The notes under the pieces were generated by a model. That model was not told where the DNA came from, did no database searches, and saw only the letters and a program-made list of their open reading frames with translations. A stretch of DNA of 64,000 nucleotides from Orbicella franksi (lineage: Eukaryota): positions 8,122,001-8,186,000 of the forward strand of contig OZ116701.1 of NCBI GenBank assembly GCA_964199315.1, given 5' to 3'. A program made the translations under genes and the position numbers. Position 1 is the first letter of the stretch. Each line of letters opens with the position of its first letter. Shown here in pieces: positions 13,135-37,841 of the stretch.

Positions 13135-13192
13135 ATTAGTGCACGAGGATTGAATTTCATGTTTCCTAATGTTTCTAGTGCCACCTTCTTTT

Positions 13193-15102: not shown

Positions 15103-15166
15103 ATTGGTTAAAACGGCGGCAAAGATACTATAAAAAGCTTGCAAGAACAAAAATATTATCTTAGTC
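15103..15166 (+). promoter_or_regulatory. Putative core promoter of peptide gene copy 1: ATTGG (CCAAT), TATAAAA 15129-15135, initiator-like TTAGTC
   Basis: Motif order and spacing 25-90 bp upstream of ATG 15190, largely conserved in the paralogs. No transcript data. Confidence 0.5.
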
Positions 15167-15189
15167 GTCGATAGAAGAAAAGAGGAGCT

Positions 15190-15616
15190 ATGAAGGCTAA
15201 ACTACTTATTCTCTTCGTGCTTGTAGCTGGCTCAATTCTCGCCTGTACAGAAGGCAGTTTATCGTACATTGGGCAACCACCCATTGGAAGAAAGAGAGAG
15301 GTACGCTTGTATTTTGGTTTTTAGCTACAGTCACCAGTCTGGCTTTTTTTTTAGCGAACTTTCTGTACAAGAATACTCTAAGTAAAAACCAAAGGTTCAT
15401 GCAATAAGTCTTGGAGGTACTCCTTAAAATGTTTCATTTGAATCGTTATAAATAACAATCAAACCACTAGTTTCACCAACACTTTTCATTTGGATTACAT
15501 TATCATTTTAGTTTCAGAAGGTCCAACTAGAAGTGTGCCGAGCAGCAAGGCAGATTCGATGTGATGATTTGGAAGACAAAGGAATGAAAGAGATGACTAC
15601 AGGCTACAATCGTTAA
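15190..15616 (+). CDS. Secreted amidated-peptide precursor, copy 1; exons 15190-15300 and 15518-15616; 69 aa MKAKLLILFVLVAGSILACTEG-SLSYIGQPPI-GRKR-EKVQLEVCRAARQIRCDDLEDKGMKEMTTGYNR
   Basis: Hydrophobic signal peptide ending TEG, Gly plus basic RKR site, phase-0 GT...AG intron (GAG|gtacgc, tttcag|AAG), two-Cys tail, stop TAA. Intact in four paralogs. Confidence 0.85.
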
Positions 15617-17428
15617 CTGAAACCCGGAAAACTGACACAAGAACCAAGGACCTAAGGAATGTTTTAACTGGACTTGATATCATGGAATTAAATCTGTCTT
15701 AAATTAACTAATAATAGAAAATAGAAGGAATCGTAAAAATTTAAACGTCTTTTTCTTTGTCACTTTGGCTGATTGGTCTCGATTATGGACTATTTGACGC
15801 GAATAGGGGATTTTTAGTCGTGTGGATAGCACGCTAGATCGTCGAAGGTACACTGTACCCCCGCCCCCCTCCCGCCATCTTGAGTTTTGCCCCTTCCCCT
15901 TCACACTCCTTTGCTCCTTGGTGGTAAGTACAAGTTAGGTTTCTCTTTTCCTGGTCAAGCTAAAAAGACAAAGAGAAACTCAACCATTTCTTTCGATCTA
16001 TTTTTAGCGGTATAGAACTAATTTTCCGTAAATTATCGACACGATAATGACACTGCAAAATTTCGGAAGTTTGATTTTTGCCAGATTGATCTTAAAGCCA
16101 GTAATTTCCCAATACAACTCTTCGTGCGACCATGTTTGCATTGCAAGTTGAAAATGCAAGTATTATCAACGTTCTACAAGTTACAACAACATCATGATAT
16201 TGCATCGAGCTGGAACGAGTTTCAGGGCGTTCGAGCCTAGTGTTTCTGCGCTTCCTTACTACACAGGAGACTCATTTTGCAATGCCACGCCACGTTAAGA
16301 AAAGAGATGTACAGCTGTTTCGACAAAGCTTGTGCACAAAAACGTAAAAGCGTACGCGACAGGACCACTGTATCCGGGGTCCAGCTCGCTTGGCTTATTT
16401 TCTGTTTTGAAGCAAGACGTTCCCGCCTCCCCTCCCCTCCCCCCCCCCCCGAAAAAAAACCTTTTAAAGAGACTGCTACAAGAGTTAAATGAATGGTGTA
16501 AATAGTTTCTTATTGGGGCGTCTATAAGTTGAGACAACAGGAAAACTACGGCTGCTTTTCATTATGCCAGACCAACCAGTTAGAGAGCAGTGGATTAACC
16601 CAGGAAAATGGAGGAACATTTTTCGGTCAAATCTGGACAACTGAAAGGAACGGCTTTGACCATTTTCTATTCGACCACCAAAGTGAAAATCTACGGAATA
16701 GAAGTAGGGCGAACCGATTTGTCAAAATGGAACGGCCAATTGCGGTCCGATCGGTCAGACCGATCCGAAACGGACCTTTCCATTTGACGTTCTACCGAAA
16801 TTTCCGGAATTTTTGGCACCATGGAAAGCACCCTAAGACTCCTCAACCAATCAGTGCGATAGTTCTGCCATAATTTGTATCCTGATGAAACTCATGTGAA
16901 TCTGGGTGTTGAAGTCTGCGTGATTCAAGAACAGCTTGTCAGCTGTTTCCTCTTATGCTGATAACTCGAGCCATTTTTGTTAGGAGAATTTCTCGAGCAG
17001 CAAAAAGGGTCTTGAAATTCAACTAAAAGCTAAATGAAACTCACTTTAACCAGTTTTATTATTATTATTATTATTATTATTTCTATTTTTATTATTATTT
17101 GTTTTTTTTTCATCTTATCTTATTTTATTTTAGGCTCTTTTTCTACTTCTCTACAGATTCTGTGTAAAGTTGAAGGCGGAAATAATGAAATGAAGTTAGA
17201 CACTTACGCTAACAACTTATCTAGTTTAACCTAGTTTATCTTTAAATTGATTGCTACTTGAAAATAGCAGTTAACTAAGATAGAAAAACACCAAAGAGAT
17301 GATAATAAACCATAAAGGAACAAGAAATGAGAAGATTAACTCGGATTACAAACGATGAACCTGAACATTTTAGGCTAAACTTTTCAAGACGAGCAAACCA
17401 TGATGTAGCTCATTTAAATATGCGTGGC

Positions 17429-18367
17429 TTAATTTACTCTTTCAGTCAAAGAGCTTTCTGTTCGCGCTAGAGTATTTAAAGCAAACGAAAATCCATCGTT
17501 ACGAGTGCCTTTCTCCTTCCAAACATCTCCAGGCTCGCTGGGATTTTGATGGTCCGTCCACGCTCTCTTTTCGTTGTCCGCACCAATGGCTTCGCTTTGC
17601 TTCACTTGTTTCAGCTTGCATTCAGTGTCCTCTCTCTTGCGGATGCGCATGCAGTAATCGCCCTTTAGACTCCGGGAAATGCGAAAAGCCTTCTTTGCAG
17701 CTTTCCTGAATTCTTTGCTCTTAAACGAACACACTGAGGGATTAAACAGCGCATGCGAAAAGGCTAGTATCTCCACAGTAACAACGAGAGTCCCGAATGA
17801 GTCGAACTGGTCCATTATAGGTGTCACATACAACAACTCAATGACTTTCAGGGGCGTTAGACACACCACCAACACTATAAATACAACTAAATGCATTCTT
17901 ATGATGCTCCTTCGCATTTTCACGGTGCCACAGATATCAAATCGTGACCGTGATCGAAATCGTTGCACAACGGTGCGGAGTTTTCTCGAAACTCTTGCGA
18001 ACGTAAAGGACAGAATTACAAGAGGTATAAAATAAAGCAAAATAAAGACTGGCACATGATAACAAAGGAAAACTAGTAAGTAGTCATCTGGGCGCTCCTC
18101 GGTACAAACTAGTCTATCTTTCGACATGGTAGTTGAGCTGAAGAAGACCTGTGACTGAGCCAAAATACACGCTGCAATCGAAAAGTAAGTCCGCTGTCAC
18201 CATGTTGCAAAGCAGATTGTTGGTCACATTTCGCAGTTCCTTTACTCGATAGAATACAAACAATATGGCTGTGTCGACGACGAAAGCGAGAACAAGAAGC
18301 GTCACATAAAGTCCAAACCCAAAAACGTGAAGCCATTCGGGAAGCTCGTCTACAGAAAATATGCCTG
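17429..18367 (-). pseudogene. GPCR pseudogene copy 1
   Basis: Paralog of 39630-40880. Lacks the first 21 codons, has a 218-bp frameshifting deletion (TM2-TM4) and a private 40-bp deletion at the C-terminus. Confidence 0.93.
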
Positions 18368-20510
18368 AAAATCGGAGGTCTTCCCTTTGGTTTTGGTCTT
18401 TCGAGACTGATGGGTATAAATTTAGTTTGAGGTAGTTAAGGGTAATAGAACGTAGCGTTGCAACGCTACGTTCTATTGGCCTTAGCTACATCAAGAGGAA
18501 AGGCCCGACACCACCAAAACCAATGTTAAGAGCGATAGGTCAGCTAATGAAGAGAAACGATATTGTAATTACGCGACCAGATAAAGGCTCAAGAGTCGTG
18601 ATCTTGGACAAAACAGAATATGTCAGCCTACTGAGGGAATCATCTATTAGTGATGAAACTAAATTTATACCCATCAGTCTCGAAAGACCAAAAGCAAAGG
18701 GAAGACCTCTGAAGCATTACCACCCACTACTTAAAAAGGAGAAGGATCTGTCCTCCATCGTGCAAAGAATTCTTCCGAAACCCATAGCCGACTCACTGAT
18801 CCAAAAGGGTTCTAGGCTCGCACACCTTTATGGTTTGCCAAAGACCCACAAGAAGAAACTAGCGGTCCGTCCAATCCTGTCAGCAACAAGAACCTACAAT
18901 TACAAGCTTGCTAAGGGGCTTGATGAGGAGCTAAAACCTTTGTCCGTCAACGACCAAACCGTTAATGACATCTTCTCGTTTGCTGGTGATCTTCATGAGA
19001 TGAAAATCGACGAACAGGACATTTTAGTGTCATACGATGTTCCGTCTCTTTTCGCAAACGTACCAGTGGATGAAACAATCGAAATCCTAGCGGAAAAAGC
19101 TTTCAAACCCGATTGATTCAATAAGGAATATGACCTCAACACCACAAAAACTGACCTTATGGAGCTGTTAGAAGTTGCTACGAAAAACCGGCTTTTCCAA
19201 TTCGAAGGAAATCTGTATGAGCAAGTGGACCGGGTTACCATGGGCTCTCCCCTCGGGTCACTAATGGCAAATGCGTTTATGTGCAATATTGAAGAAAAAT
19301 TGGAAAACTAAAACAAGATGCCTGTTTTCTATAAGCGCTATGTCGACGACACCCTCAGCAAATGCCCGATGTTTCATCTGCCTCTGAATTCTTGTTAACA
19401 CTGAATGAAATCCACCCCTCACTCAGCTTCACAATGGAATTCGAAGACAACGGCAAGCTTCCCTTTCTTGGAATAGTGATTATCAGAAATGGTCCCCGAC
19501 TAGATACGAAGGTCTACGTGAAACCGACCGATACTGGGCTTTTACTGCATTACCAAAGCCATGTTGACCTAAGGTATAAACATTCTGTACTGAAGACAAT
19601 GTTAAACCGTGCGTTCAAACTCTCCTCGAATTGGCAGTTCTTCCATCAAGAATGTGAACGTCTTAAAATGGTTTTTGCTCGCCTGCATTATCCCAAAACC
19701 CTCGTAGAGGACGTAGAGGACACCATCAGACATTTTATTGAAATGAAAGTTACTGAGAATGTGTGTTCTAAACAACAAGTATCCATGAACAAGATGCTCC
19801 CATCAGAATTGTCTTACCGTTCAAAGACCAGAAATCGGCGAATGCGGTAAGACACCAACTCGGTGATCTCAGTCGAAAGATTGATGCCGTTGTCCAGCCT
19901 GTTTACACAAGTCAGAATATCAAGAGACAATTCAAACCAAAGGAACATAAACCTCCAATTGAGAATCAACAAAACGTTGTTTATTATTACGAGTGTGGTC
20001 TGTGCGATGCAGACTATGCCGGCCTCACGAGTTGACACCTACATCAACGTGTGGAGGAACATAAGCGATCAACAGTCGGCAACGACGTAAAGGATGAGCA
20101 CGGAAAGGATCCAGAGACCATTGGAAGCAATTTCAAGATTTTGAAAAAATGTCAGAGTAAACTCGACTGTTTGATTATTGAAAAGCTTTTTATTCGTAAA
20201 CTTCAACCAAAATTGAACAAACAGAGTGACTCGATCCGCGCGAAGCTATTTACTTAATTATTTTTAAATTATTTTATTTCAAATCGTTTCTATCGCCTTA
20301 ACGTTTTTATTGCTCATGCCGCAATTTTCTTGTATTGTTTCTATGTAGTCAGTGTCTCATTAGCATTTTCATTAGCATTCTCATAATCGATTGTATATAT
20401 TTGGACGCATGCAAAACTTTTACTTTTCAATTTGAAAATGACCGTCGAGCGGTCGGTTGTCTTTTAACGTTAACGTTTTTAGTGAAATCCGTTTCTAAAA
20501 ATTTGTTGAT
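18368..20510 (+). mobile_element. Penelope-like retroelement (RT plus GIY-YIG), 5'-truncated with inverted 5' end, inactive; copy 1
   Basis: ITRPDKG, LYGLPKTHK, RPILS, SYDVPSLF, MGSPLG, RYVDD, LPFLG, VYVKPT, VVYYYECGLCDADY, EKLFIRKLQPKLNKQ. Contains stops and frameshifts. Confidence 0.93.
18444..18477. repeat. Perfect 34-bp palindrome at the fold-back centre of the retroelement 5' end (also 24692-24723 and 32607-32642)
   Basis: aatagaacgtagcgttg|caacgctacgttctatt. Confidence 0.95.
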
Positions 20511-21613
20511 TCGAAAAAATCGTTTTACCATAAAAGCATAGCATTTGTAACACACAGCCCTTTTTCTCCATTATATTCCTTTCGTCTTCTTGTTAACTGA
20601 TAGTAGCAATTATTTGTTATAGCATACAACAAAGCTAAGTTCAAAATAGCTGCCGGCAGATGAATCGGACTATTTTTAACGTCGTACCACAACTATTTTT
20701 TGCCTCGTACAACATGGATTAAAACCATTAATGCTAAAAATCGTCTCCTGTTACATACTAGCAATGTGAGTTTACTAAACTGGGAAGTGCTAGAAAGTTC
20801 GGAGCAAGTGTTTTATTAGTCAAAGAAAACTGCAAAATATTGACAGCATTCATAACAGAAAACTCTACAGAATGTTTCCACCTAGGCGCTCCCCATGTCG
20901 TTTCTCTCAAATTGAGGCCAGTAATGCCTCATCAACAAAACTACACCACTCTCTAGACTGAAGGGCATCGACATTTATTGATTACGTGATCTTAGTGGTC
21001 AAGTATTGAAGTGCAGCAAGCATGAGAAGAGCCCTGATAATTATGCCGAGCAACTCCTCTTTGAAAAGCTGCCAACTTGATTTCGACTTCCGCTCATTTA
21101 GTCTCTCTTTGTAGCAACAAATGTTCAAAACCAACGAAAACGAAAATACTGGATCTGTCAGAGAATAAAAGATCCCGCAATTGTTGATAAAGTTCTAACA
21201 AATTTTCCGAGTGCAAAATGTGCTGACCATTTGCAATTCTTCACCGCTATCGTGAAATTATGATATTATGATGTGGTTGAGCTCGTCTTGGTCTCTTACA
21301 GTAAGGGGAAGGAAGAGGGGAGTGGAGGGAGAGAGGATAAAATGGTAAATGGCCAATCCGAACGCAACTTACAATCAGGGATTTCTGCTTGCCATTTGTA
21401 CAAACCTTTGACTAAACGGTTTCTTCGTGTAAAGGGTAAATAACCTGAGTGTCATTAGTGCAGCTATGACTGCAATACGAGTTTTCTCCAATTTTACCAA
21501 GTTACCAGCGCAATCCCAAAATATTTAGTTAAAACGGCGGCAAAGATACTATAAAAAAAGCTTGCAAGAAGAAAAAATATTATCTTATTCGTCGATAGAA
21601 GAAAAGAGGAGCT

Positions 21614-22036
21614 ATGAAGGCTAAACTACTTATTCTCTTCGTGCTTGTAGCTGGCGCAATTCTCGCCTGTACAGAAGGCAGTATATTGTCCATTGGGCAA
21701 CCACCCATTGGAAGAAAGAGGGAGGTACGCTTGAGTTTTGGTTTTTAACTACAGTCACCAGTTTGGCTTGTTTTTTAGTGAGCTTTCTGTACAAGAATAC
21801 TTTAAGTAATAAGCAAAGGTTCATGCAATAAGTCTTGGAGTTACTCCTTAAAATGTTTCATTTGAATCGTTGTAACAATCAAACCACTAGTTTCACCAAC
21901 ACTTTCCATTTGGATTATATTATCATTTTAGTTTCAGAAGGTCCAACGAGATGTGTGCCGAGCAGCAAGGCAGATTCAATGTGATGATTTAGAAAACGAA
22001 GGAATGAAAGAGATGACTACAGGCTACAATCGTTAA
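21614..22036 (+). CDS. Secreted amidated-peptide precursor, copy 2; exons 21614-21724 and 21938-22036; peptide SILSIGQPPI-GRKR
   Basis: Same architecture and splice sites, 69 aa, tail KVQRDVCRAARQIQCDDLENEGMKEMTTGYNR. Confidence 0.85.
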
Positions 22037-23645
22037 CTGAAACCCGGAAAACTGACACAAGAACCAAGGACTTAAGGAACGTTTTAACTGGACTTGATAT
22101 CATGGGATTAAATCTGGCTTAAATTAACTAATATTAGAAAATAAAAGGAATCGTAAAAATTTAAACGTCTTTTTCTTTGTCACTTTGGCTCATTGGTCTC
22201 GATTATGGGCTATTTATGCGAATAGGTGCGAATAGGGCATTGTTAGTCGTGTGGATAGAACGCTAGATCGTCGAAGGTGCACGGTAACTCTCCCCCCTCC
22301 CCCCCTCCTAGAGTTTTGCCCCTTCCCCGTCACACTATTCTACTCCTTGGTGGTGAGTAGAAGTTAGGTTTCTCTTTTCCTGGTCAAGCTAAAAAGGCAA
22401 AGAGAAACTCAACCATTTCTTTCCATCTGTTTTCAGAGGTATAGGACTAATTTGCCATAAATTGTCTACACGATAATGATACTGCAAAATTTCGGGAAGT
22501 TTGATTTTTGCCCCAAGGATCTTAAAGCCAGTAATTTTCCAATGGAACTTGTCGTGCGACCATGTTTGCATTACAAGTTGAAAATGCAAGTATTATCAAC
22601 ATTCTACATTTACAACAACATCATGATATTGTATCCAGCAGGAACGAGTTTCAGGGCGTTCGAGCCTAGTGTTTCTGGGCTTAGTTACTACACATGAGAC
22701 TCATTTTGCAATGCCACGCCACTTTAAGAAAAGAGATGTACAGCTGTTTCGACAAAGCTTGTGCACAAAAACGTAAAAGCGTACGCGACAGGACCACTGT
22801 ATCCGGGGTCCAGCTCGCTTGGCTTATTTTCTGTTTTGAAGCGAGACGTTCCCGTCTCCCCTCCCCTCCCCCTCTCCCCTCCGAAAAAAAAAACTCTTTT
22901 AAAAAGACTGCTACGACAGTTTAATGAATGGTATAAATAGCTTCTTATTAGGGCGTCTATAAGTTGAGACAACTGGAAAACTACGGGTGCTTTTCATTAT
23001 GCCAGACCAACCGGTCAGAGACCAGCGGGATTAACCCAGGAAAATGGAATAAAATTTTTCGGTCAAATCTGGACAACTGAAAGGAATGGCTCTGAACACT
23101 TTCTATTCGGCCACAAAAGTGAAAATCTACGGAAAAGAAGTAGGGCAACGAACCGATTTGTCAAAATGGAACGGCCAATTGCGGTCCGACCGGTCAGACC
23201 GAACCGAAATGGACCTTTCCACTTGACGTTCTACTGAAATTGCCGGAATTTTTTCATCTTATCTTATTTTATTTCAGGCTCTTTTTCTACTTTTCCACTG
23301 ATTCTGTGTAAAGTGGAAGGCGGAAATAAACGCGTGAAAATCCAATTTGCTTGGACATGCCAAGGCTTATTGAAAGATGTGGCTCTGATTCACTTTTTGA
23401 AATGAAGTTAGACACTTACTTTAGCAGCTGATCTAGTTTAATCACGTACAAAATTGATTGCTACTTGAAGATAGCAGTTAACTAAGATAGAAAAACACCA
23501 AGGAGATGATAATAAACCATAAAGGAACAAGAAATGAGAAGATTAACTCGGATTACAAACGATGAACCTGAACATTTTAGGCTAAACTTTTCAAGACGAG
23601 CAAACCATGATGTAGCTCATTTAAATATGCGTGGCTTAATTTACT

Positions 23646-24614
23646 CTAACTTTTGCCATAGTCTTCCTCCCTAGGTATATCAGTCGTTTCAGTCAAAGAG
23701 CTTTCTGTTCGCGCTAGAGTATTTAAAGCAAACGAAAATCCATCGTTACGAGTGCCTTTCTCCTTCCAAACATCTCCAGGCTCGCTGGGATTTTGATGGT
23801 CCGTCCACGCTCTCTTTTCGTTGTCCGCACCAATGGCTTCGCTTTGCTTCACTTGTTTCAGCTTGCATTCAGTGTCCTCTCTCTTGCGGATGCGCATGCA
23901 GTAATCGCCCTTTAGACTCCGGGAAATGCGAAAAGCCTTCTTTGCAGCTTTCCTGAATTCTTTGCTCTTAAACGAACACACTGAGGGATTAAACAGCGCA
24001 TGCGAAAAGGCTAGTATCTCCACAGTAACAACGAGAGTCCCGAATGAGTCGAACTGGTCCATTATAGGTGTCACATACAACAACTCAATGACTTTTAGGG
24101 GCGTTAGACACACCACCAACACTATAAATACAACTAAATGCATTCTTATGATGCTCCTTCGCATTTTCACGGTGCCACAGATATCAAATCGTGACCGTGA
24201 TCGAAATCGTTGCACAACGGTGCGGAGTTTTCTCGAAACTCTTGCGAACGTAAAGGACAGAATTACAAGAGGTATAAAATAAAGCAAAATAAAGACTGGC
24301 ACATGATAACAAAGGAAAACTAGTAAGTAGTCATCTGGGCGCTCCTCGGTACAAACTAGTCTATCTTTCGACATGGTAGTTGAGCTGAAGAAGACCTGTG
24401 ACTGAGCCAAAATACACGCTGCAATCGAAAAGTAAGTCCGCTGTCACCATGTTGCAAAGCAGATTGTTGGTCACATTTCGCAGTTCCTTTACTCGATAGA
24501 ATACAAACAATATGGCTGTGTCGACGACGAAAGCGAGAACAAGAAGCGTCACATAAAGTCCAAACCCAAAAACGTGAAGCCATTCGGGAAGCTCGTCTAC
24601 AGAAAATATGCCTG
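23646..24614 (-). pseudogene. GPCR pseudogene copy 2
   Basis: Same 5' truncation and 218-bp deletion as copy 1. Confidence 0.93.
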
Positions 24615-26757
24615 AAAATCGGAGGTCTTCCCTTTGGTTTTGGTCTTTCGAGACTGATGGGTATAAATTTAGTTTGAGGTAGTTAAGGGCAATAGAACGT
24701 AGCGTTGCAACGCTACGTTCTATCGGCCTTAGCTACATCAAGAGGAAAGGCCCGACACCACCAAAACCAATGTTAAGAGCGATAGGTCAGCTAATGAAGA
24801 GAGACGATATTGTAATTACGCGACCGGATAAAGGCTCGAGAGACGTGATCTTGGACAAAACAGAATATGTCAGCCTACTGAGGGAATCATCTATTAGTGA
24901 TGAAACTAAATTTATACCCATCAGTCTCGAAAGACCAAAAGCAAAGGGAAGACCTCTGAAGCATTACCACCCACTACTTAAAAAGGAGAAGGATCTGTCC
25001 TCCATCGTGCAAAGAATTCTTCCGAAACCCATAGCCCACTCACTGATCCAAAAGGGTTCTAGGCTCGCACACCTTTATGGTTTGCCAAAGACCCACAAGA
25101 AGAAACTAGCGGTCCGTCCAATCCTGTCACCAACAAGAACCTACAATTACAAGCTTGCTAAGGGGCTTGATGAGGAGCTAAAACCTTTGTCCGTCAACGA
25201 CCAAACCGTTAATGACATCTTCTCGATTGCTGGTGATCTTCATGAGATGAAAATCGACGAACAGGACATTTTAGTGTCATACGATGTTCCGTCTCTTTTC
25301 GCAAACGTACCAGTGGATGAAACAATCGAAATCCTAGCGGAAAAAGCTTTCAAACCCGATTGATTCAATAAGGAATATGACCTCAACATCACAAAAACTG
25401 ACCTTATGGAGCTGTTAGAAGTTGCTACGAAAAACCGGCTTTTCCAATTCGAAGGAAATCTGTATGAGCAAGTGGACCGGGTTGCCATGGGCTCTCCCCT
25501 CGGGTCACTAATGGCAAATGCGTTTATGTGCAATATTGAAGAAAAATTGGAAAAGCAAAACAAGATGCCTGTTTTCTATAACCGCTATGTCGACGACACC
25601 CTCAGCAAATGCCCGATGTTTCATCTGCCTCTGAATTCTTGTTAACACTGAATGAAATCCACCCCTCACTCAGCTTCACAATGGAATTCGAAGACAACGG
25701 CAAGCTTCCCTTTCTTGGAATAGTGATTACCAGAAATGGTCCCCGACTAGATACGAAGGTCTACGTGAAACCGACCGATACTGGGCTTTTACTGCATTAC
25801 CAAAGCCATGTTGACCTAAGGTATAAACATTCTGTACTGAAGACAATGTTAAACCGTGCGTTCAAACTCTCCTCGAATTGGCAGTTCTTCCATCAAGAAT
25901 GTGAACGTCTTAAAATGGTTTTTGCTCGCCTGCATTATCCCAAAACCCTCGTAGAGGACGTAGAGGACACCATCAGACATTTTATTGAAATGAAAGTTAC
26001 TGAGAATGTGTGTTCTAAACAACAAGTATCCATGAATAAGATGCTCCCATCAGAATTGTCTTACCGTTCAAAGACCAGAAATCGGCGAATGCGGTAAGTC
26101 ACCAACTCGGTGATCTCAGTCGAAAGATTGATGCCGTTGTCCAGCCTGTTTACACAAGTCAGAATATCAAGAGACAATTCAAACCAAAGGAACATAAACC
26201 TCCAATTGAGAATCAACAAAACGTTGTTTATTATTACGAGTGTGGTCTGTGCGATGCAGACTATGCCGGCTTCACGAGTTGACACCTACATCAACGTGTG
26301 GAGGAACATAAGCGATCAACAGTCGGCAACGACGTAAAGGATGAGCACGGAAAGGATCCAGAGACCATTGAAAGCAACTTCAAGATTTTGAAAAAATGTC
26401 AGAGTAAACTCGACTGTTTGATTTTTGAAAAGCTTTTTATTCGTAAACTTCAACCAAAATTGAACAAACAGAGTGACTCGATCCGCGCGAAGCTATTTAC
26501 TTAATTATTTTAAAATTATTTTATTTCAAATCGTTTCTATCGCCTTAACGTTTTTATTACTCATGCCGCAATTTTCTTGTATTGTTTCTATGTAGTCAGT
26601 GTCTCATTAGCATTTTCATTAGCATTCTCATAATCGATTGTATATATTTGGACGCATGCAAAACTTTTACTTTTGAACTTGAAAATGACCGTCGAGCGGT
26701 CGGTTGTTTTTTAACGTTAACGCTTTTAGTGAAATCCGTTTCTAAAAATTTGTTGAT
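24615..26757 (+). mobile_element. Penelope-like retroelement, copy 2
   Basis: 2143 bp, same ends and the same shared lesions (e.g. KPD-stop) as copies 1 and 3. Confidence 0.93.
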
Positions 26758-29527
26758 TCGAAAAAATCGTTTTACCATAAAAGCATAGCATTTGTAACAC
26801 ACAGCCCTTTTTCTCCATTATATTTCCTTTCGTCTTCTTGTTAACTGATAGTAGCAATTATTTGTTATAGTATACAACAAAGCTAAGTTCAAAATAGCTG
26901 CCGGCAGATGAATCGGACTATTTTTAACGTCGTACCACAACTATTTTTTGCCTCGTACAACATGGATTAAAACCATTAATGCTAAAAATCGTCTCCTGTT
27001 ACATACTAGCAGTGTGAGTTTACTAAACTGGGAAGTGCTAGAAAGTTCGGAGCAAGTGTTTTATTAGTCAAAGAAAACTGCAAAATATTGACAGCATTCA
27101 TAACAGAAAACTCTACAGAATGTTTCCAACTAGCCGCTCCCCATGTCGTTTCTCTCAAATTGAGGCCAGTAATGCCTCATCAACAAAACTACACCACTCT
27201 CTAGACTGAAGGGCATCGACATTTATTGATTACGTGATCTTAGTGGTCAAGTATTGAAGTGCAGCAAGCATGAGAAGAGCCCTGATAATTATGCCGAGCA
27301 ACTCCTCTTTGAAATGCTGCCAACTTGATTTCGACTTCCGCTCATTTAGTCTCTCTTTGTAGCAACAAATGTTCAAAACCAACGAAAACGAAAATACTGG
27401 ATCTGTCAGAGAATACAAGATCCCGCAATTGTTGATAAAGTTCTAACAAATTTTCCGAGTGCAAAATGTGCTGACCATTTGCAATTCTTCACCGCTATCG
27501 TGAAATTATGATATTATGATGTGGTTGAGCTCGTCTTGGTCTCTTACAGTAAGGGGAAGGAAGAGGGGAGTGGAGGGAGAGAGGATAAAATGGTAAATGG
27601 CCAATCCGAACGCAACTTACAATCAGGGATTTCTGCTTGCCATTTGTACAAACCTTTGACTAAACGGTTTCTCCGTGTAAAGAGTAAATAACCTGAGTGT
27701 CATTAGTGCAGCTATGACTGCAATACGAGTTTTCTCCAATTTTACCAAGTTACCAGCGCAATCCCAAAATATTTAGTAATCAAAGCAAGAAATACAGAGC
27801 CACTGGAAAACGAACTATATACAAGAAATAACTTTCTGTATCAGTTAGACGACTCTACACAAATATAACTCGATAATGCTAAAACTAGAGACTTCTATGC
27901 TTTACTAAACCGGAAAATTTACACTGTCAGCAAGACTGGCCCAATGAATTGAAGCAGTAAAATAAGACTAGATGAGAATGTCTGGATAAAAATTTTCACC
28001 TCCATAAAGAGCATCTGCAAGGAGACAAAATTGAAGGAATTCCAGTTTAAATTAATTCATAGGATTGTAGTTACTAAAAAAGAGCTTCATCGATGTGGGA
28101 TTAAAGCGGACGATGAATATCTCTACTGTGGTAAGAAAGATTCAATTGAAGAGAAACTATTTGGTATCATATCTGGCCCATACGAAAAAGAAATATTAAA
28201 GAAATTTAATTACACGATCCTATTTATGAAATACTTCATATACACCAGTAAGATGGAGAACCAAGCTATTTACCTTTCAGTCTTTGTTAATAAAGTTTTA
28301 TTTAAGTATGGAATAGAAAACTTTAGTCCGGCATTAGCTACGAAAAACTGCCCCTCGCAAAAGCGCAGAACCTTACATAAAATTAGTTAAATTATACTTG
28401 AGAGCAATGTTAACGTTAGTAATGGAAACCAATGTTAAGTAGCCTAAGCGATATATGTGATAGTTGTTGTAATTACTAGTAGTGCAGGAAACCAATAAAG
28501 TACTTAACTACTAAAAAAAAAATTAGTGCACGAGGATTTAATTTCATGTTTCCTAGTGCTTCCAGTACCTCCTTCCTTTTGGCAATATCAGTGTGTTCCT
28601 TCACATTTTTGGAATAAAGGCGCAAATTTGGACTACATACTACATACTACTGCATTACATACTTAGCTGAGTTTTAAATGTTAGTAAACTTACCATTCCA
28701 AAATTTTGTTTCCCTTTAGGTTTTCTCTTCATAGTAGGTTGCTCACGTAACTTGAACTTATAGCTCTATTTTGGATTTGAGACTTGAGTAGGAGTTCCTT
28801 TATTCCAAAAAGTTATTTTGAAGACAGAAATTTAACCAGCCAAAACTTGATACGATCGATAAACTCATCTTTAGGTCATCTTCCTCTCGAGCTCTGGGCT
28901 TACTCAAGAAATCTTAGCTTTTAATGTACTCCTATTTCCATATATCTACAACTGAAAAGTTGTCTTTTGCCAGGTCAAATCCTGAGCGAAACAAACGTCA
29001 ATGCAAGATTCTGTCATTTACAGAATAAAGGATTCCGGCATTGACAAGAAAGTGCAAGTGAATTGAAAAATATGGTCTGAAACTTCGTTGAACTTAAATT
29101 ATAAGATCCGTCTATTAAATAACCATTTACAATAATTAAGCCAGTGTGGTTTATCTACCTTAAAGTGAACTTCAGAGTCCAGATGCCGGCTGTAGCCACG
29201 CGGTAAATTGAAACACAGTCACAGTTTACAATTAACAATTCCATGTATTTATGGAAACTTCCTTTATGGGTATTAACACAGAATCATGGAAAAAAAGATA
29301 ACAGGTCCCATTAACCGCTCTATCCAAAATAGCTTCCTCTTACACAAGTTGATCTAGGTTAATATTATGGCTATGACGAAAGGAAAAGCCACGTTCACCA
29401 CAATTTTACTATTGATAGCTCGGCAGACTTGTATTTCATTGGTTAAAACGGCGGCAAAGATACTATAAAAAAAGCTTGCAAGAAGAAAAAATATTATCTT
29501 ATTCGTCGATAGAAGAAAAGAGGAGCT

Positions 29528-29947
29528 ATGAAGGCTAAACTACTTATTCTCTTCGTGCTTGTAGCTGGCTCAATTCTCGCCTGTACAGAAGGCAGTATAT
29601 CCATTGGGCAACCACCCATTGGAAGAAAGAGAGAGGTACGCTTGAGTTTTGGTTTTTAACTACAGTCACCAGTTTGGCTTGTTTTTTAGTGAGCTTTCTG
29701 TACAAGATTACTTTAAGTAATAAGCAAAGGTTCATGCAATAAGTCTTGGAGTTACTCCTTAAAATGTTTCATTTGAATCGTTGTAACAATCAAACCACTA
29801 GTTTCACCAACACTTTCCATTTGGATTATATTATCATTTTAGTTTCAGAAGGTCCAACGAGATGTGTGCCGAGCAGCAAGGCAGATTCAATGTGATGATT
29901 TAGAAAACGAAGGAATGAAAGAGATGACTACAGGCTACAATCGTTAA
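29528..29947 (+). CDS. Secreted amidated-peptide precursor, copy 3; exons 29528-29635 and 29849-29947; peptide SISIGQPPI-GRKR
   Basis: 68 aa; in-frame 3-bp deletion inside the peptide; splice sites intact. Confidence 0.85.
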
Positions 29948-31562
29948 CTGAAACCCGGAAAACTGACACAAGAACCAAGGACTTAAGGAACGTTTTAACT
30001 GGACTTGATATCATGGGATTAAATCTGGCTTAAATTAACTAATATTAGAAAATAAAAGGAATCGTAAAAATTTAAACGTCTTTTTCTTTGTCACTTTGGC
30101 TCATTGGTCTCGATTATGGGCTATTGATGCGAATAGGTGCGAATAGGGCATTGTTAGTCGTGTGGATAGAACGCTAGATCGTCGAAGGTGCACGGTAACT
30201 CTCTCCCCCCCCCCCCCCCCTCCTAGAGTTTTGCCCCTTCCCCGTCACACTATTCTACTCCTTGGTGGTGAGTAGAAGTTAGGTTTCTCTTTTCCTCGTC
30301 AAGCTAAAAAGGCAAAGAGAAACTCAACCATTTCTTTCCATCTGTTTTCAGAGGTATAGGACTAATTTGCCATAAATTGTCTACACGATAATGATACTGC
30401 AAAATTTCGGGAAGTTTGATTTTTGCCCCAAGGATCTTAAAGCCAGTAATTTTCCAATGGAACTTGTCGTGCGACCATGTTTGCATTGCAAGTTGAAAAT
30501 GCAAGTATTATCAACATTCTACATTTACAACAACATCATGATATTGTATCCAGCAAGAACGAGTTTCAGGGCATTCGAGCCTAGTGTTTCTGGGCTTAGT
30601 TACTACACATGAGACTCATTTTGCAATGCCACGCCACTTTAAGAAAAGAGATGTACAGCTGTTTCGACAAAGCTTGTGCACAAAAACGTAAAAGCGTACG
30701 CGACAGGACCACTGTATCCGGGGTCCAGCTCGCTTGGCTTATTTTCTGTTTTGAAGCAAGACGTTCCCGTCTCCCCTCCCCTCCCCCTCTCCCCTCCGAA
30801 AAAAAAAAAACTCTTTTAAAAAGACTGCTACGACAGGTTAATGAATGGTATAAATAGCTTCTTATTAGGGCGTCTATAAGTTGAGACAACTGGAAAACTA
30901 CGGGTGCTTTTCATTATGCCAGACCAACCGGTCAGAGACCAGCGGGATTAACCCAGGAAAATGGAATAAAATTTTTCGGTCAAATCTGGACAACTGAAAG
31001 GAATGGCTCTGAACACTTTCTATTCGGCCACAAAAGTGAAAATCTACGGAAAAGAAGTAGGGCAACGAACCGATTTGTCAAAATGGAACGGCCAATTGCG
31101 GTCCGACCGGTCAGACCGAACCGAAACGGACCTTTCCACTTGACGTTCTACTGAAATTGCCGGAATTTTTTCATCTTATCTTATTTTATTTCAGGCTCTT
31201 TTTCTACTTTTCCACTGATTCTGTGTAAAGTGGAAGGCGGAAATAAACGCGTGAAAATCCAATTTGCTTGGACATGCCAAGGCTTATTGAAAGATGTGGC
31301 TCTGATTCACTTTTTGAAATGAAGTTAGACACTTACTTTAGCAGCTGATCTAGTTTAATCACGTACAAAATTGATTGCTACTTGAAGATAGCAGTTAACT
31401 AAGATAGAAAAACACCAAGGAGATGATAATAAACCATAAAGGAACAAGAAATGAGAAGATTAACTCGGATTACAAACGATGAACCTGAACATTTTAGGCT
31501 AAACTTTTCAAGACGAGCAAACCATGATGTAGCTCATTTAAATATGCGTGGCTTAATTAACT

Positions 31563-32531
31563 CTAACTTTTGCCATAGTCTTCCTCCCTAGGTATATCAG
31601 TCGTTTCAGTCAAAGAGCTTTCTGTTCGCGCTAGAGTATTTAAAGCAAACGAAAATCCATCGTTACGAGTGCCTTTTTCCTTCCAAACATCTCCAGGCTC
31701 GCTGGGATTTTGATGGTCCGTCCACGCTCTCTTTTCGTTGTCCGCACCAATGGCTTCGCTTTGCTTCACTTGTTTCAGCTTGCATTCAGTGTCCTCTCTC
31801 TTGCGGATGCGCATGCAGTAATCGCCCTTTAGACTCCGCGAAATGCGAAAAGCCTTCTTTGCAGCCTTCCTGAATTCTTTGCTCATAAACGAACACACTA
31901 AGGGATTAAACAGCGCATGCGAAAAGGCTAGTATCTCCACAGTAACAACGAGCGTCCCGAATGGGTCGAACTGGTCCATTATAGGTGTCACATGCAACAA
32001 CTCAATGACTTTTAGGGGCGTTAGACACACCACCAACACTATAAATACAACTAAATGCATTCTTATGATGCTCCTTCGCATTTTCACGGTGCCACAGATA
32101 TCAAATCGTGACCGTGATCGAAATCGTTGCACAACGGTGCGGAGTTTTCTCGAAACTCTTGCGAACGTAAAGGACAGAATTACAAGAGGTATAAAATAAA
32201 GCAAAATAAAGACTGGCACATGATAACAAAGGAAAACTAGTAAGTAGTCATCTGGGCGCTCCTCGGTACAAACTAGTCTATCTTTCGACATGGTAGTTGA
32301 GCTGAAGAAGACCTGTGGCTGAGCCAAAATACACGCTGCAATCGAAAAGTAAGTCCGCTGTCACTATGTTGCAAAGCAGATTGTTAGTCACATTTCGCAG
32401 TTCCTTTACTCGATAGAATACAAACAATATGGCTGTGTCGACAACGAAAGCGAGAACAAGAAGCGTCACATAAAGTCCAAACCCAAAAACGTGAAGCCAT
32501 TCGGGAAGCTCGTCTACAGAAAATATGCCTG
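31563..32531 (-). pseudogene. GPCR pseudogene copy 3
   Basis: Same 5' truncation and 218-bp deletion. Confidence 0.93.
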
Positions 32532-34674
32532 AAAATCGGAGGTCTTCCCTTTGGTTTTGGTCTTTCGAGACTGATGGGTATAAATTTAGTTTGAGGTAGT
32601 TAAGGGCAATAGAACGTAGCGTTGCAACGCTACGTTCTATTGGCCTTAGCTACATCAAGAGGAAAGGCCCGACACCACCAAAACCAATGTTAAGAGCGAT
32701 AGGTCAGCTAATGAAGAGAGACGATATTGTAATTACGCGACCGGATAAAGGCTCGAGAGACGTGATCTTGGACAAAACAGAATATGTCAGCCTACTGAGG
32801 GAATCATCTATTAGTGATGAAACTAAATTTATACCCATCAGTCTCGAAAGACCAAAAGCAAAGGGAAGACCTCTGAAGCATTACCACCCACTACTTAAAA
32901 AGGAGAAGGATCTGTCCTCCATCGTGCAAAGAATTCTTCCGAAACCCATAGCCCACTCACTGATCCAAAAGGGTTCTAGGCTCGCACACCTTTATGGTTT
33001 GCCAAAGACCCACAAGAAGAAACTAGCGGTCCGTCCAATCCTGTCACCAACAAGAACCTACAATTACAAGCTTGCTAAGGGGCTTGATGAGGAGCTAAAA
33101 CCTTTGTCCGTCAACGACCAAACCGTTAATGACATCTTCTCGATTGCTGGTGATCTTCATGAGATGAAAATCGACGAACAGGACATTTTAGTGTCATACG
33201 ATGTTCCGTCTCTTTTCGCAAACGTACCAGTGGATGAAACAATCGAAATCCTAGCGGAAAAAGCTTTCAAACCCGATTGATTCAATAAGGAATATGACCT
33301 CAACATCACAAAAACTGACCTTATGGAGCTGTTAGAAGTTGCTACGAAAAACCGGCTTTTCCAATTCGAAGGAAATCTGTATGAGCAAGTGGACCGGGTT
33401 GCCATGGGCTCTCCCCTCGGGTCACTAATGGCAAATGCGTTTATGTGCAATATTGAAGAAAAATTGGAAAAGCAAAACAAGATGCCTGTTTTCTATAAGC
33501 GCTATGTCGACGACATCCTCAGCAAATGCCCGATGTTTCATCTGCCTCTGAATTCTTGTTAACACTGAATGAAATCCACCCCTCACTCAGCTTCACAATG
33601 GAATTCGAAGACAACGGCAAGCTTCCCTTTCTTGGAATAGTGATTATCAGAAATGGTCCCCGACTAGATACGAAGGTCTACGTGAAACCGACCGATACTG
33701 GGCTTTTACTGCATTACCAAAGCCATGTTGACCTAAGGTATAAACATTCTGTACTGAAGACAATGTTAAACCGTGCGTTCAAACTCTCCTCGAATTGGCA
33801 GTTCTTCCATCAAGAATGTGAACGTCTTAAAATGGTTTTTGCTCGCCTGCATTATCCCAAAACCCTCGTAGAGGACGTAGAGGACACCATCAGACATTTT
33901 ATTGAAATGAAAGTTACTGAGAATGTGTGTTCTAAACAACAAGTATCCATGAACAAGATGCTCCCATCAGAATTGTCTTACCGTTCAAAGACCAGAAATC
34001 GGCGAATGCGGTAAGACACCAACTCGGTGATCTCAGTCGAAAGATTGATGCCGTTGTCCAGCCTGTTTACACAAGTCAGAATATCAAGAGACAATTCAAA
34101 CCAAAGGAACATAAACCTCCAATTGAGAATCAACAAAACGTTGTTTATTATTACGAGTGTGGTCTGTGCGATGCAGACTATGCCGGCTTCACGAGTTGAC
34201 ACCTACATCAACGTGTGGAGTAACATAAGCGATCAACAGTCGGCAACGACGTAAAGGATGAGCACGGAAAGGATCCAGAGACCATCGGAAGCAACTTCAA
34301 GATTTTGAAAAAATGTCAGAGTAAACTCGACTGTTTGATTTTTGAAAAGCTTTTTATTCGTAAACTTCAACCAAAATTGAACAAACAGAGTGACTCGATC
34401 CGCGCGAAGCTATTTACTTAATTATTTTAAAATTATTTTATTTCAAATCGTTTCTATCGCCTTAACGTTTTTATTACTCATGCCGCAATTTTCTTGTATT
34501 GTTTCTATGTAGTCAGTGTCTCATTAGCATTTTCATTAGCATTCTCATAATCGATTGTATATATTTGGACGCATGCAAAACTTTTACTTTTCAATTTAAA
34601 AATGACCGTCGAGCGATCGGTTGTTTTTTAACGTTAACGCTTTTAGTGAAATCCGTTTCTAAAAATTTGTTGAT
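32532..34674 (+). mobile_element. Penelope-like retroelement, copy 3
   Basis: 2143 bp, same ends and lesions. Confidence 0.93.
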
Positions 34675-37419
34675 TCGAAAAAATCGTTTTACCATAAAAG
34701 CATAGCATTTGTAACACACAGCCCTTTTTCTCCATTATATTCCTTTCGTCTTCTTGTTAACTGATAGTAGCAATTATTTGTTATAGTATACAACAAAGCT
34801 AAGTTCAAAATAGCTGCCGGCAGATGAATCGGACTATTTTTAACGTCGTACCACAACTATTTTTTGCCTCGTACAACATGGATTAAAACCATTAATGCTA
34901 AAAATCGTCTCCTGTTACATACTAGCAGTGTGAGTTTACTAAACTGGGAAGTGCTAGAAAGTTCGGAGCAAGTGTTTTATTAGTCAAAGAAAACTGCAAA
35001 ATATTGACAGCATTCATAACAGAAAACTCTACAGAATGTTTCCAACTAGCCGCTCCCCATGTCGTTTCTCTCAAATTGAGGCCAGTAATGCCTCATCAAC
35101 AAAAATACACCACTCTCTAGACTGAAGGGCATCGACATTTATTGATTACGTGATCTTAGTGGTCAAGTATTGAAGTGCAGCAAGCATGAGAAGAGCCCTG
35201 ATAATTATGCCGAGTAACTCCTCTTTGAAATGCTGCCAACTTGATTTCGACTTCCGCTCATTTAGTCTCTCTTTGTAGCAACAAATGTTCAAAACTAACG
35301 AAAACGAAAATACTGGATCTGTCAGAGAATACAAGATCCCGCAATTGTTGATAAAGTTCTAACAAATTTCCGAGTGCAAAATGTGCTGACCATTTGCAAT
35401 TCTTCACCGCTATCGTGAAATTATGATATTATGATGTGATTGAGCTCGTCTTGGTCTCTTACAGTAAGGGGAAGGAAGAGGGGAGTGGAGGGAGAGAGGA
35501 TAAAATGGTAAATGGCCAATCCGAACGCAACTTACAATCAGGGATTTCTGCTTGCCATTCGTACAAACCTTTGACTAAACGGTTTCTCCGTGTAAAGAGT
35601 AAATAACCTGAGTGTCATTAGTGCAGCTATGACTGCAATACGAGTTTTCTCCAATTTTACCAAGTTACCAGCGCAATCCCAAAATATTTAGTAATCAAAG
35701 CAAGAAATACAGAGCCACTGGAAAACGAACTATATACAAGAAATAACTTTCTGTATCAGTTAGACGACTCTACACAAATATAACTCGATAATGCTAAAAC
35801 TAGAGACTTCTATGCTTTACTAAACCGGAAAATTTACACTGTCAGCAAGACTGGCCCAATGAATTGAAGCAGCAAAATAAGACTAGATGAGAATGTCTGG
35901 ATAAAAATTTTCACCTCCATAAAGAGCATCTGCAAGGAGACAAAATTGAAGGAATTCCAGTTTAAATTAATTCATAGGATTGTAGTTACTAAAAAAGAGC
36001 TTCATCGATGTGGGATTAAAGCGGACGATGAATATCTCTACTGTGGTAAGAAAGATTCAATTGAAGAGAAACTATTTGGTATCATATCTGGCCCATACGA
36101 AAAAGAAATATTAAAGAAATTTAATTACACGATCCTATTTATGAAATACTTCATATACACCAGTAAGATGGAGAACCAAGCTATTTACCTTTCAGTCTTT
36201 GTTAATAAAGTTTTATTTAAGTATGGAATAGAAAACTTTAGTCCGGCATTAGCTACGAAAAACTGCCCCTCGCAAAAGCGCAGAACCTTACATAAAATTA
36301 GTTAAATTATACTTGAGAGCAATGTTAACGTTAGTAATGGAAACCAATGTTAAGTAGCCTAAGCGATATATGTGATAGTTGTTGTAATTACTAGTAGTGC
36401 AGGAAACCAATAAAGTACTTAACTACTAAAAAAAAAAATTAGTGCACGAGGATTTAATTTCATGTTTCCTAATGTTTCCAGTGCCACCTTCCTTTTGGCA
36501 ATATCAATGTGTTCGTTCACATTTTTGGAATAAAGGCGCAAATTTGGACTACATACTACATACTACTGCATTACATACTTAGCTGAGTTTGTAATGTTAG
36601 TAAGCTTACCATTCCAAAATTTTGTTTCCCTTTAGATTTTCTCTTCATGGTAGGTTGCTCACGTAACTTGAACTTATAGCTCTATTTTGGATTTGAGACT
36701 TGAGTAGGAGTTCCTTTATTCCAAAAAGTTATTTTGAAGACAGAAATTTAACCAGCCAAAACTTGATACGATCGATAAACTCATCTTTAGGTCATCTTCC
36801 TCTCGAGCTCTGGGTTTACTCAAGAAATCTTAGCTTTTAATGTACTCCTATTTCCATATATCTACAACTGAAAAGTTATCTTTTGCCAGGTCAAATCCTG
36901 AGCGAAACAAACGTCAATGCAAGATTCTGTCATTTACAGAATAAAGGATTCCGGCATTGACAACAAAGTGCAAACGAATTGAAAAATATGGTCTGAAACT
37001 TCGTTGAACTTAAATTATAAGATCCGTCTATTAAATAACCATTTACAATAATTAAGCCAGTGTGGTTTTTATCTTCCATAAATTGAACTTCAAAGTCCAG
37101 ATGCCGGCTGTAGCCACGCGGTAAATTGAAACACAGTCACAGTTTACAATTAACAATTCCATGTATTTATGGAAACTCTACTTCCTTTATGGGTATTAAT
37201 ATAGAATCAAGGAAAAAAAGACAACAGGTCCCATTAACCTCTCTATCCCAAATAGCTTACTCTTACATAAGTTGATCTAGGTTAATATCACCACAATTTT
37301 ACTATTAATAGCTCGGCAGAATTGTATTTCATTGGTTAAAACGACGGCAAAGATACCATAAAAAAGCTTGCAAGAAGAAAAAATATTATCTTATTCGTCG
37401 ATAGAAGAAAAGAGGAACT

Positions 37420-37841
37420 ATGAAGGCTAAACTACTTATTCTCTTCGTACTTGTAGCTGGCTCAATTGTCGCCTGCACGGAAGGCAGGAGAGGGCCCGTT
37501 TGGCAAGCACCCGTTGGAAGAAAGAGAGAGGTACGCTTGTGTTGTGGTTTTTAACTACAGTCACCAGTTTGGCTTTTTTTCAGCGAGCTTTCTGTACAAG
37601 AATACTTTAAGTAATAACCAAAGGTCCATGCAATAAGCCTTGGAGTTACTCCTTAAAATGTTTCATTTGAATCGTTATAACAATCAAACCACTAGTTTCA
37701 CTAACACTTTCCATTTGGATTATATTATCGTTTTAGTTTCAGAAGGTCCAACGAGATGTGTGCCGAGCAGCAAGGCAGATTCAGTGTGATGATTTAGAAA
37801 ACGAAGGAATGAAAGAGATGACTACAGGCTACAATCGTTAA
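37420..37841 (+). CDS. Secreted amidated-peptide precursor, copy 4; exons 37420-37530 and 37743-37841; peptide RRGPVWQAPV-GRKR
   Basis: 69 aa; signal, GRKRE, splice sites and Cys tail conserved; mature segment strongly diverged. Confidence 0.85.

Follow-up and report, generated by a model that had tools for sequence, protein, structure and literature searches.

The window analyzed here, a 64,000-nt stretch of the Orbicella franksi genome (assembly GCA_964199315.1, contig OZ116701.1, positions 8,122,001 to 8,186,000 of the forward strand), contains four tiny two-exon genes in tandem. These are real members of an undescribed family of predicted secreted precursors in corals, each carrying one short putative amidated peptide. 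We consider it probable that they are compact RNA polymerase II genes (CCAAT, TATA, two coding exons, a phase-0 intron and ATTAAA) for prohormone-like precursors, and that the released peptide is a neuropeptide or hormone acting on a G-protein-coupled receptor (GPCR). Coordinates within the window are collected in Table 1.

All four copies share one layout. Exon 1 measures 111, 111, 108 and 111 nt in copies 1 to 4 and always runs from GAG into the donor GTACGC, and the intron is in phase 0 and about 207–211 nt long. The start codons, GT donors, AG acceptors, phase-0 junctions and stops had been described in an earlier, sequence-only reading of this DNA and are all present; the translations likewise have the layout that it described, namely a hydrophobic N-terminus, one peptide of 9–10 residues, G-R-K-R and a tail with a C-x7-C motif. 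The peptide segments read SLSYIGQPPI, SILSIGQPPI, SISIGQPPI and RRGPVWQAPV (copies 1 to 4), in each case followed by G-R-K-R-E, and the tail includes C-R-A-A-R-Q-I-[QR]-C. The putative signal peptide comprises an n-region (M-K-A-K), a 15-residue hydrophobic core and then C-T-E-G; by inspection, the small residues at −3/−1 of its putative cleavage site (T-E-G) are conserved family-wide. Upstream, a TATA box lies about 61–64 nt 5' of the ATG in every copy, with an inverted CCAAT box about 25 nt 5' of it in copies 1, 3 and 4. Copy 2 lacks the CCAAT box, which was lost because units 1 and 2 of the array meet about 90 nt 5' of its ATG. Downstream, ATTAAA occurs 71 nt 3' of the stop in all four copies. 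The promoter block (ATTGGTTAAAAC...GCAAAGATACTATAAAA), with its TATA and CCAAT elements, is also kept in the intact relatives from other corals.

On the splice junction we depart from the sequence-only reading, which had joined GAG to AAG and obtained proteins of 68–69 aa. The true acceptor probably lies 6 nt upstream, giving 71, 71, 70 and 71 aa. The acceptor region (TAG TTT CAG AAG) offers three consecutive in-frame AGs (15510–15520, 21930–21940, 29841–29851 and 37735–37745). The first, [TC]AG, is the only acceptor invariant in all 14 intron-bearing relatives, and it is also the one used by a Desmophyllum pertusum gene model and by an intron-less copy (both described below). Thus, exon 2 most likely starts at the positions given in Table 1, and the predicted proteins read ...GRKRE-FQK-VQRDVC.... 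The six extra bases vary in a coding-like manner (TTT/CTT/ATC, then GAG/GAA/CAG). Alternative use of the three acceptors would yield products differing by 2 or 3 residues just past the cleavage site.

Indirect evidence on transcription and splicing comes from the annotated D. pertusum gene model and from one further relative. The protein P0117 is encoded without an intron on contig L023 (310–501), where the promoter block and the flanks on either side can be aligned with relatives that have the intron; compared with contig L012, exactly 240 nt, from GT to TAG, are absent. Its open reading frame (ORF) is intact, and its tail carries an extra Cys and a one-residue insertion. When an intron is lost precisely from a gene at its native locus, the classical explanation is recombination with the reverse transcript of a spliced mRNA. 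Thus, this locus suggests that a family member was once transcribed and spliced at these junctions.

Relatives were recovered from 21-kb loci of other coral assemblies, retrieved with receptor orthologues as anchors, and from an exon-2 pattern scan of JGI/ENA metagenome contigs, which added 13 contigs (nine further contig types). About 16 distinct intact members keep the ORF, the Gly plus basic residues and both Cys, and the 14 intact members with an intron are uniform in their splice signals (GT donor, [TC]AG acceptor, phase 0) as well as in having both Cys and two or three basic residues after the Gly. For example, locus L001 (receptor 90% identical) contains an intact orthologue of copy 4 with the same convergent position and length, encoding YGGPVGQAPM and then GRKRE, together with a second intact member (FGFPAQQVPM) and one that has decayed. 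Peptides from the metagenome contigs include FGRPSKPM, FGRPSAPM, YGRPSAPI, YVPVPYIK and FLPSV. A search of 1.84 billion representative proteins with a profile of the tail returned only three matches: an exon-2 read-through ORF, P0117, and P0116. The last is an annotated 81-aa two-exon gene of D. pertusum (assembly GCA_029204205.1, locus L022), convergent with a receptor that lies 1.1 kb away and is 68% identical to that of the window. As judged from these searches, the family has so far been found only in robust-clade stony corals (Orbicella, D. pertusum and several coral assemblies).

The relative at locus L004 (receptor 71% identical) has a more elaborate structure. Its first exon encodes EYRPPMYPI-GRKRE, two identical 57-nt phase-0 exons (13179–13123 and 14985–14929) encode TSAIARGPILQAPI-GRKRE, and the last exon encodes the Cys loop. 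The two extra exons separate the signal/peptide exon from the Cys-loop exon and are each preceded by a pyrimidine tract and an AG acceptor and followed by a donor running from GAG into GTA. This gene (12264–15636, minus strand) appears to have become a three-peptide precursor. Other relatives have decayed. The same damaged member occurs in three contigs from different samples (L015:3304–3704, L017 and L019), where the phase is broken by a 2-nt insertion in the A-run of the cleavage site, the signal core contains Arg and Pro, and the stop has moved. A short-tail type is also represented (L009, L012, L013, L014, L016 and L002); these members end ...E-G-M/V-K-G-stop, and the C-terminal Gly could permit amidation of the tail. 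Two more short-tail relatives (L010:1300–1800, and L018 at about 4280–4770 on the minus strand) have a repeat-like insertion inside the intron, and a search of 900 nt did not recover their first exons.

Selection on the precursor is uneven. For the signal and tail, the ratio of nonsynonymous to synonymous substitution rates (dN/dS) is 0.15–0.6 between species; two within-array pairs exceed this range, copy 1 versus copy 2 reaching 1.88. In the tail, dN is about 0.02–0.14 versus dS of 0.1–0.9 and intron distances of 0.25–0.44, and nine columns, both Cys among them, are invariant. By these measures the tail is under purifying selection. In a neutral simulation that leaves indels out, an intact ORF, the Gly-basic-basic site and both Cys are kept, per lineage, with P = 0.025 (p = 0.14) or P = 0.0003 (p = 0.30), and the relatives keep their coding and splice features at an intron divergence of 14–33%. 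Thus, it is retention in relatives across species, and not the intactness of the array copies, that excludes a chance origin.

The 15-nt cleavage site is unchanged in 10 of 11 close pairs, the single change being synonymous (AGA to AGG), and every intact member has the Gly site as G-RKR, G-KKR, G-RR or G-KR, followed by E or Q. The peptide codons of copy 4 differ from those of copies 1–3 at 7–11 of 27–30 nt (26–37%), versus 4–5% in non-coding sequence (Fisher p = 3e-4 to 2e-6), and all nine nucleotide differences between copies 4 and 2 are nonsynonymous. This hypervariability could reflect either positive selection or gene conversion of all but the peptide, which are not separable here. Within the copy-4 lineage, four species have RR-GPVWQAPV, YG-GPVGQAPM, AR-GPILQAPI and AR-GPVGWPPM. 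Because G-P-[VI]-x-x-x-P-[VMI] is kept across these species, we predict a mature octapeptide that starts with Gly-Pro.

The processing steps that we propose are taken from established secretory-pathway biochemistry. Signal peptidase would cleave behind the conserved ...[AS]-[CSF]-T-[ED]-G motif, a prohormone convertase would cut after the two or three basic residues, a carboxypeptidase would trim these residues, and peptidylglycine alpha-amidating monooxygenase would turn the exposed Gly into a C-terminal amide. The predicted product is one short proline-containing peptide ending P-[I/V/M]-NH2, and a C-terminal piece with one C-x7-C disulfide loop and then an acidic stretch would be released alongside it. 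The peptide would most likely act as a neuropeptide or hormone on a GPCR, for which the neighboring receptor is a candidate; the cell type, like the receptor, is putative. Copy 4 most likely yields GPVWQAPV-NH2 (predicted [M+H]+ 852.47, computed). A product pGlu-Ala-Pro-Val-NH2 (pGlu, pyroglutamate) had been suggested for this copy, but the orthologues place Arg directly before the conserved G-P-[VI]...P-[VMI] octapeptide. Gly-Pro follows Arg at the start of the peptide in three of the four species with the copy-4 type, and X-Pro falls within the first four residues in most other members. The only candidate for N-terminal protection in copies 1–3 is an internal Gln-Pro-Pro; these copies would yield S(L/I)xxIGQPPI-NH2 or a trimmed form, with pGlu-Pro-Pro-Ile-NH2 as a putative product. 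Computed [M+H]+ values are 1073.60, 1023.62 and 910.54 for the full amides of copies 1–3, and 436.26 and 396.22 for the two suggested pGlu tetrapeptides. We suspect that the C-terminal tail is a carrier or sorting domain. Disulfide-loop sorting signals are known from granins and POMC, and this is the analogy on which the suspicion is based.

Each unit of the tandem array comprises a peptide gene together with a dead GPCR and a degenerate fragment of reverse transcriptase. Identity between units 2 and 3 is 98.8%, the introns of copy 4 are about 5% divergent from those of the other copies, and intron divergence within the array is 1–7%. These comparisons indicate a recent origin of the array, through segmental duplication of a 6.4–7.9 kb unit that already carried the dead receptor and the retroelement fragment. 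All three dead receptors share one deletion of about 218 bp, which removes about residues 85–151. Thus, the receptor broke once, before the unit was amplified. The sequence-only reading had counted three of four receptors as broken, and the three dead copies are confirmed; however, they are not independent losses, as the deletion common to all rules out three separate events. It had also taken the intact peptides beside the broken receptors as a sign that the peptide gene is the retained cargo of the array. This argument fails, since the array is too young and the receptors broke only once. Four intact 70-codon ORFs would be expected without selection in units so little diverged (the chance of intactness at 5% divergence is about 1 in 2, an extrapolation from the neutral simulation), and we therefore rejected intactness within the array as evidence of selection.

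A translated search of the window revealed a fifth family member on the minus strand, overlooked by the earlier reading. It is of the short-tail type and has decayed: there is a stop right after the signal peptide, G-R-K-R lies in another frame and the GT donor is missing. The same lesion occurs in an independent metagenome contig (L011) that is 98.9% identical over 9.6 kb, so that the decay is not an assembly error. The reverse-transcriptase fragment within the units gave a weak RVT_1 match (E = 1.4e-4, below the Pfam cut-off, at 33323–33562, with equivalents in units 1 and 2), and the adjoining ORFs of 197 aa and 162 aa had no Pfam match. Dispersed copies at 469–1245 and 7782–8463, which are 80–91% identical to in-unit segments at 30382–31119 and 34678–35335, are probably repeat elements.

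The intact receptor convergent with copy 4 and a second GPCR about 5 kb from it (416 and 369 aa) are both rhodopsin-family ORFs whose nearest feature-space and named relatives are peptide receptors. The closest match to the 416-aa receptor is P0001 (98% identical); its 90% cluster includes O. faveolata XP_020623656.1 and two truncated O. faveolata models, and O. faveolata XP_020623687.1 falls in the 90% cluster of the 369-aa GPCR. At loci L001, L003, L004 and L024 the two receptors have the same order and orientation, with the 369-aa GPCR upstream of the 416-aa one. The convergent pairing of peptide gene and receptor recurs in four species (Orbicella, L001, L004 and D. pertusum), and the neighboring receptor is a candidate target of the peptide. 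No convergent peptide gene was found within 10 kb at L005 and L006, which hold distant relatives of the receptor (57% identity). More speculatively, and with considerable doubt, the peptide gene and the convergent GPCR might be a cognate ligand and receptor whose physical linkage persists from Orbicella to Desmophyllum. The fast-changing peptides, including those of the Orbicella-specific IGQPPI-amide array, would then be lineage-specific signals, for instance in reproduction or settlement, and the Cys-loop tail would be a granule-sorting or carrier domain.

Other accounts of the family deserve consideration. A secreted non-neuronal role (defense, antimicrobial, venom-gland or other exocrine), in which the mature peptide diversifies under positive selection and the signal and pro-region stay constant, would explain why the peptide is hypervariable while the adjacent cleavage site does not change and the signal and tail are conserved. 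It would also suit the exclusively amino-acid-altering differences between the peptide codons of copies 4 and 2 and the combination of birth-and-death turnover with tandem amplification. We nevertheless regard it as unlikely. The peptides, at 5–10 residues, un- or weakly charged, Cys-free and proline-rich, are atypical of antimicrobial or pore-forming peptides, the octapeptide is kept across four species in the copy-4 lineage, the gene is paired with a peptide-type GPCR in four species, and the nearest feature-space neighbors are hormone precursors. We assign a lower probability still to the proposal that function resides in the C-x7-C tail, acting as a disulfide-looped peptide or small protein, with the N-terminal amidated stretch as a dispensable spacer or co-product. 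The tail is indeed the most conserved coding part, with nine invariant columns including both Cys and dN far below dS, and the short-tail members ending ...M-K-G-stop could themselves be amidated. However, Gly and basic residues directly precede the tail in every intact member, the copy-4-type octapeptide is kept across species, and L004 has apparently duplicated the peptide-plus-GRKRE module alone, as extra phase-0 exons, with a single tail.

Finally, the genes could be non-functional, that is, chance ORFs, young pseudogenes or repeat passengers. The array is so young that intactness within it is uninformative, retroelement debris surrounds the genes and several relatives have decayed, all of which such a view would accommodate; we consider it very improbable, given that, across species whose introns diverge by 14–33%, the reading frame, the splice and cleavage sites, the Cys pair and the promoter have all been preserved. 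In addition, the position beside the receptor is conserved, one relative shows a precise intron loss, and the flanks of the relatives are not identical, unlike those of recent horizontal or repeat-borne copies.

Several observations weigh against our preferred interpretation as neuropeptide or hormone precursors. The peptide is the least conserved part of the precursor, which is unusual for neuropeptides and fits defense or pheromone peptides as well, and the decay of several family members points to high turnover. The signal peptide was recognized by visual inspection. Two spliced forms, used as queries in word-based protein searches, brought up no spliced Orbicella product, only an exon-2 read-through ORF, P0057, and exact look-ups of four spliced forms, made with the earlier GAG-AAG junction rather than the corrected 71-aa forms, gave no match; both approaches are insensitive for tiny proteins. 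The exon-2 pattern scan of the metagenome contigs for spliced transcripts yielded 13 of 13 contigs that are genomic and contain the intron. Lastly, a copy-4-type convergent gene is absent within 10 kb of the receptor at the close loci L002, L003 and L024, with only a short-tail member within that distance at L002.

Table 1. Features of the peptide gene array and its surroundings (positions in the window)
Feature	Position	Strand	Details
Copy 1 core promoter	15103..15136	+	ATTGG 15103-15107, TATA 15129-15136; 87 and 61 nt before ATG
Copy 1 exon 1, coding sequence	15190..15300	+	Putative signal peptide, SLSYIGQPPI, G-RKR-E; donor GAG-GTACGC
Copy 1 exon 2, coding sequence and stop	15512..15616	+	Probable (corrected) acceptor TAG-TTT; C-x7-C tail; earlier start 15518; ATTAAA 15687-15692
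Copy 2 TATA box	21550..21559	+	CCAAT missing; unit 1/unit 2 junction ~21525
Copy 2 exon 1	21614..21724	+	Putative signal peptide, SILSIGQPPI, G-RKR-E
Copy 2 exon 2	21932..22036	+	Probable (corrected) acceptor; C-x7-C tail, stop; ATTAAA 22107-22112
Copy 3 promoter	29438..29473	+	ATTGG 29438-29442, TATA 29464-29473
Copy 3 exon 1	29528..29635	+	Putative signal peptide, SISIGQPPI (shorter by one codon), G-RKR-E
Copy 3 exon 2	29843..29947	+	Probable (corrected) acceptor; tail, stop; ATTAAA 30018-30023
Copy 4 promoter	37331..37365	+	ATTGG 37331-37335; TATA-like CATAAAAAA 37357-37365
Copy 4 exon 1	37420..37530	+	Putative signal peptide, RR-GPVWQAPV, G-RKR-E; ancestral copy, convergent with intact receptor
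Copy 4 exon 2	37737..37841	+	Probable (corrected) acceptor; tail, stop; ATTAAA 37912-37917
Tandem array	15065..40816		Unit 1 15065-21529, unit 2 21525-29365, unit 3 29400-37300, partial founder 37293-40816 (self-comparison)
Fifth copy, decayed, short-tail type	8977..9395	-	Promoter block still recognizable ~9440-9490
Intact rhodopsin-class peptide-receptor-like GPCR, 416 aa	39630..40880	-	Convergent with copy 4
Second GPCR, 369 aa	46040..47149	-	~5 kb from first
Broken GPCR copies	31566..32586 (unit 3), 23649-24669 (unit 2), 17441-18422 (unit 1)	-	One common ~218-bp deletion

A survey of cnidarian precursors that covered O. faveolata reported seven neuropeptide families for Scleractinia (Koch and Grimmelikhuijzen, 2020; PMC7523074). 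The same work describes preprohormones with a single peptide copy that follows the signal immediately, namely those of Antho-RWamide and of the phenyllactyl peptides, the latter reported only from sea anemones. The sequence-only reading had suggested that some hexacorallian precursors combine this layout with a two-Cys tail; the single-peptide layout is confirmed, and neither the Antho-RWamide nor the phenyllactyl precursors have a Cys pair. The new family does not figure in the lists of that work, and the strings GRKRE, PIGRKR, PVGRKR and PMGRKR occur in none of the 11 supplementary files of PMC7523074. Full-text literature searches for peptide and tail strings returned nothing relevant, a literature search for coral peptidomics returned nothing specific, and the Nematostella deorphanization paper contains no matching peptide. 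No Pfam family, the GnRH, Adipokin_hormo and Corazonin profiles included, was matched at E ≤ 10 by P0116, by P0117 or by either of the copy 4 exons, and a PDB sequence search gave no match. The peptide sequences appear to be undescribed, as had been supposed, with no match to a paper, Pfam family or catalogue.

The family would add to the approximately seven published for stony corals, and it would be missed by regex and repeat-based screens because its peptide is single-copy and hypervariable and its exons are tiny. With a candidate receptor 1.8 kb away, it offers a straightforward ligand-receptor test in a reef-building coral. It also illustrates two routes to more peptide copies, whole-gene tandem duplication in the window and apparent phase-0 peptide-exon duplication at L004, and clearly exemplifies a cleavage site that stays constant next to a peptide that changes rapidly.

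Among known systems, the precursors of Antho-RWamide, RNamide, RIamide and KAamide are similar in build: about 65–85 aa, a signal, one short peptide, Gly plus basic residues and a charged tail of 30–50 residues, with several paralogous genes per species encoding variant peptides. However, their tails lack the Cys pair, and their C-termini are RW-, RN-, RI- or KA-amide, whereas those of the new family are P-[IVM]-amide. The peptides end P-[IVM]-Gly rather than the (L/I)RW-Gly that defines Antho-RWamides, and resemble none of the sequences in Additional file 10 of PMC7523074. No sequence similarity to the Antho-RWamide and Antho-RIamide precursors is detectable, and homology with them was rejected on that account. 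Phenyllactyl precursors have Phe right after the signal and a tri- or tetrapeptide before the Gly plus basic residues, and Phe or Tyr is likewise the first residue in many members of the new family. The window copies, however, start with Ser or Arg, and the relatives that start with Phe have peptides of 5–10 residues and unrelated tails.

GnRH, AKH and corazonin prohormones share the order of signal, one peptide, G-K/R-R and associated peptide. In a language-model feature search with the D. pertusum member, the nearest named clusters were GnRH, AKH, corazonin, PDH, NPF, spexin and PrRP prohormones (0.81–0.88), which is below the reliability line of the tool and serves as a lead only. AKH-associated peptides carry Cys. 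Unlike these hormones, the new family has no pGlu-...-W motif, and there is no Pfam match or sign of common descent. Short proline-containing amides also include the PRPamide oocyte-maturation hormones of hydrozoans. The X1PRX2amides/GPRGamides and RPamides (PMC7523074) are likewise short, amidated and proline-protected, with cnidarian-type processing. All of these differ from the new family in having multi-copy precursors and Arg in the core, in place of a Pro-aliphatic C-terminus, a single peptide copy and a Cys-loop tail.

Conotoxins and frog skin peptides combine a conserved signal and pro-region with a hypervariable mature peptide. The new family resembles them in its constant signal and pro-part, unchanged cleavage site, fast-changing mature peptide and tandem duplication; unlike theirs, its variable peptide is N-terminal, tiny and Cys-free, and the copy 4 type is kept across genera. 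Overall, from these sequence comparisons, the family appears to be undescribed but of a known kind, that of the amidated-peptide preprohormones.

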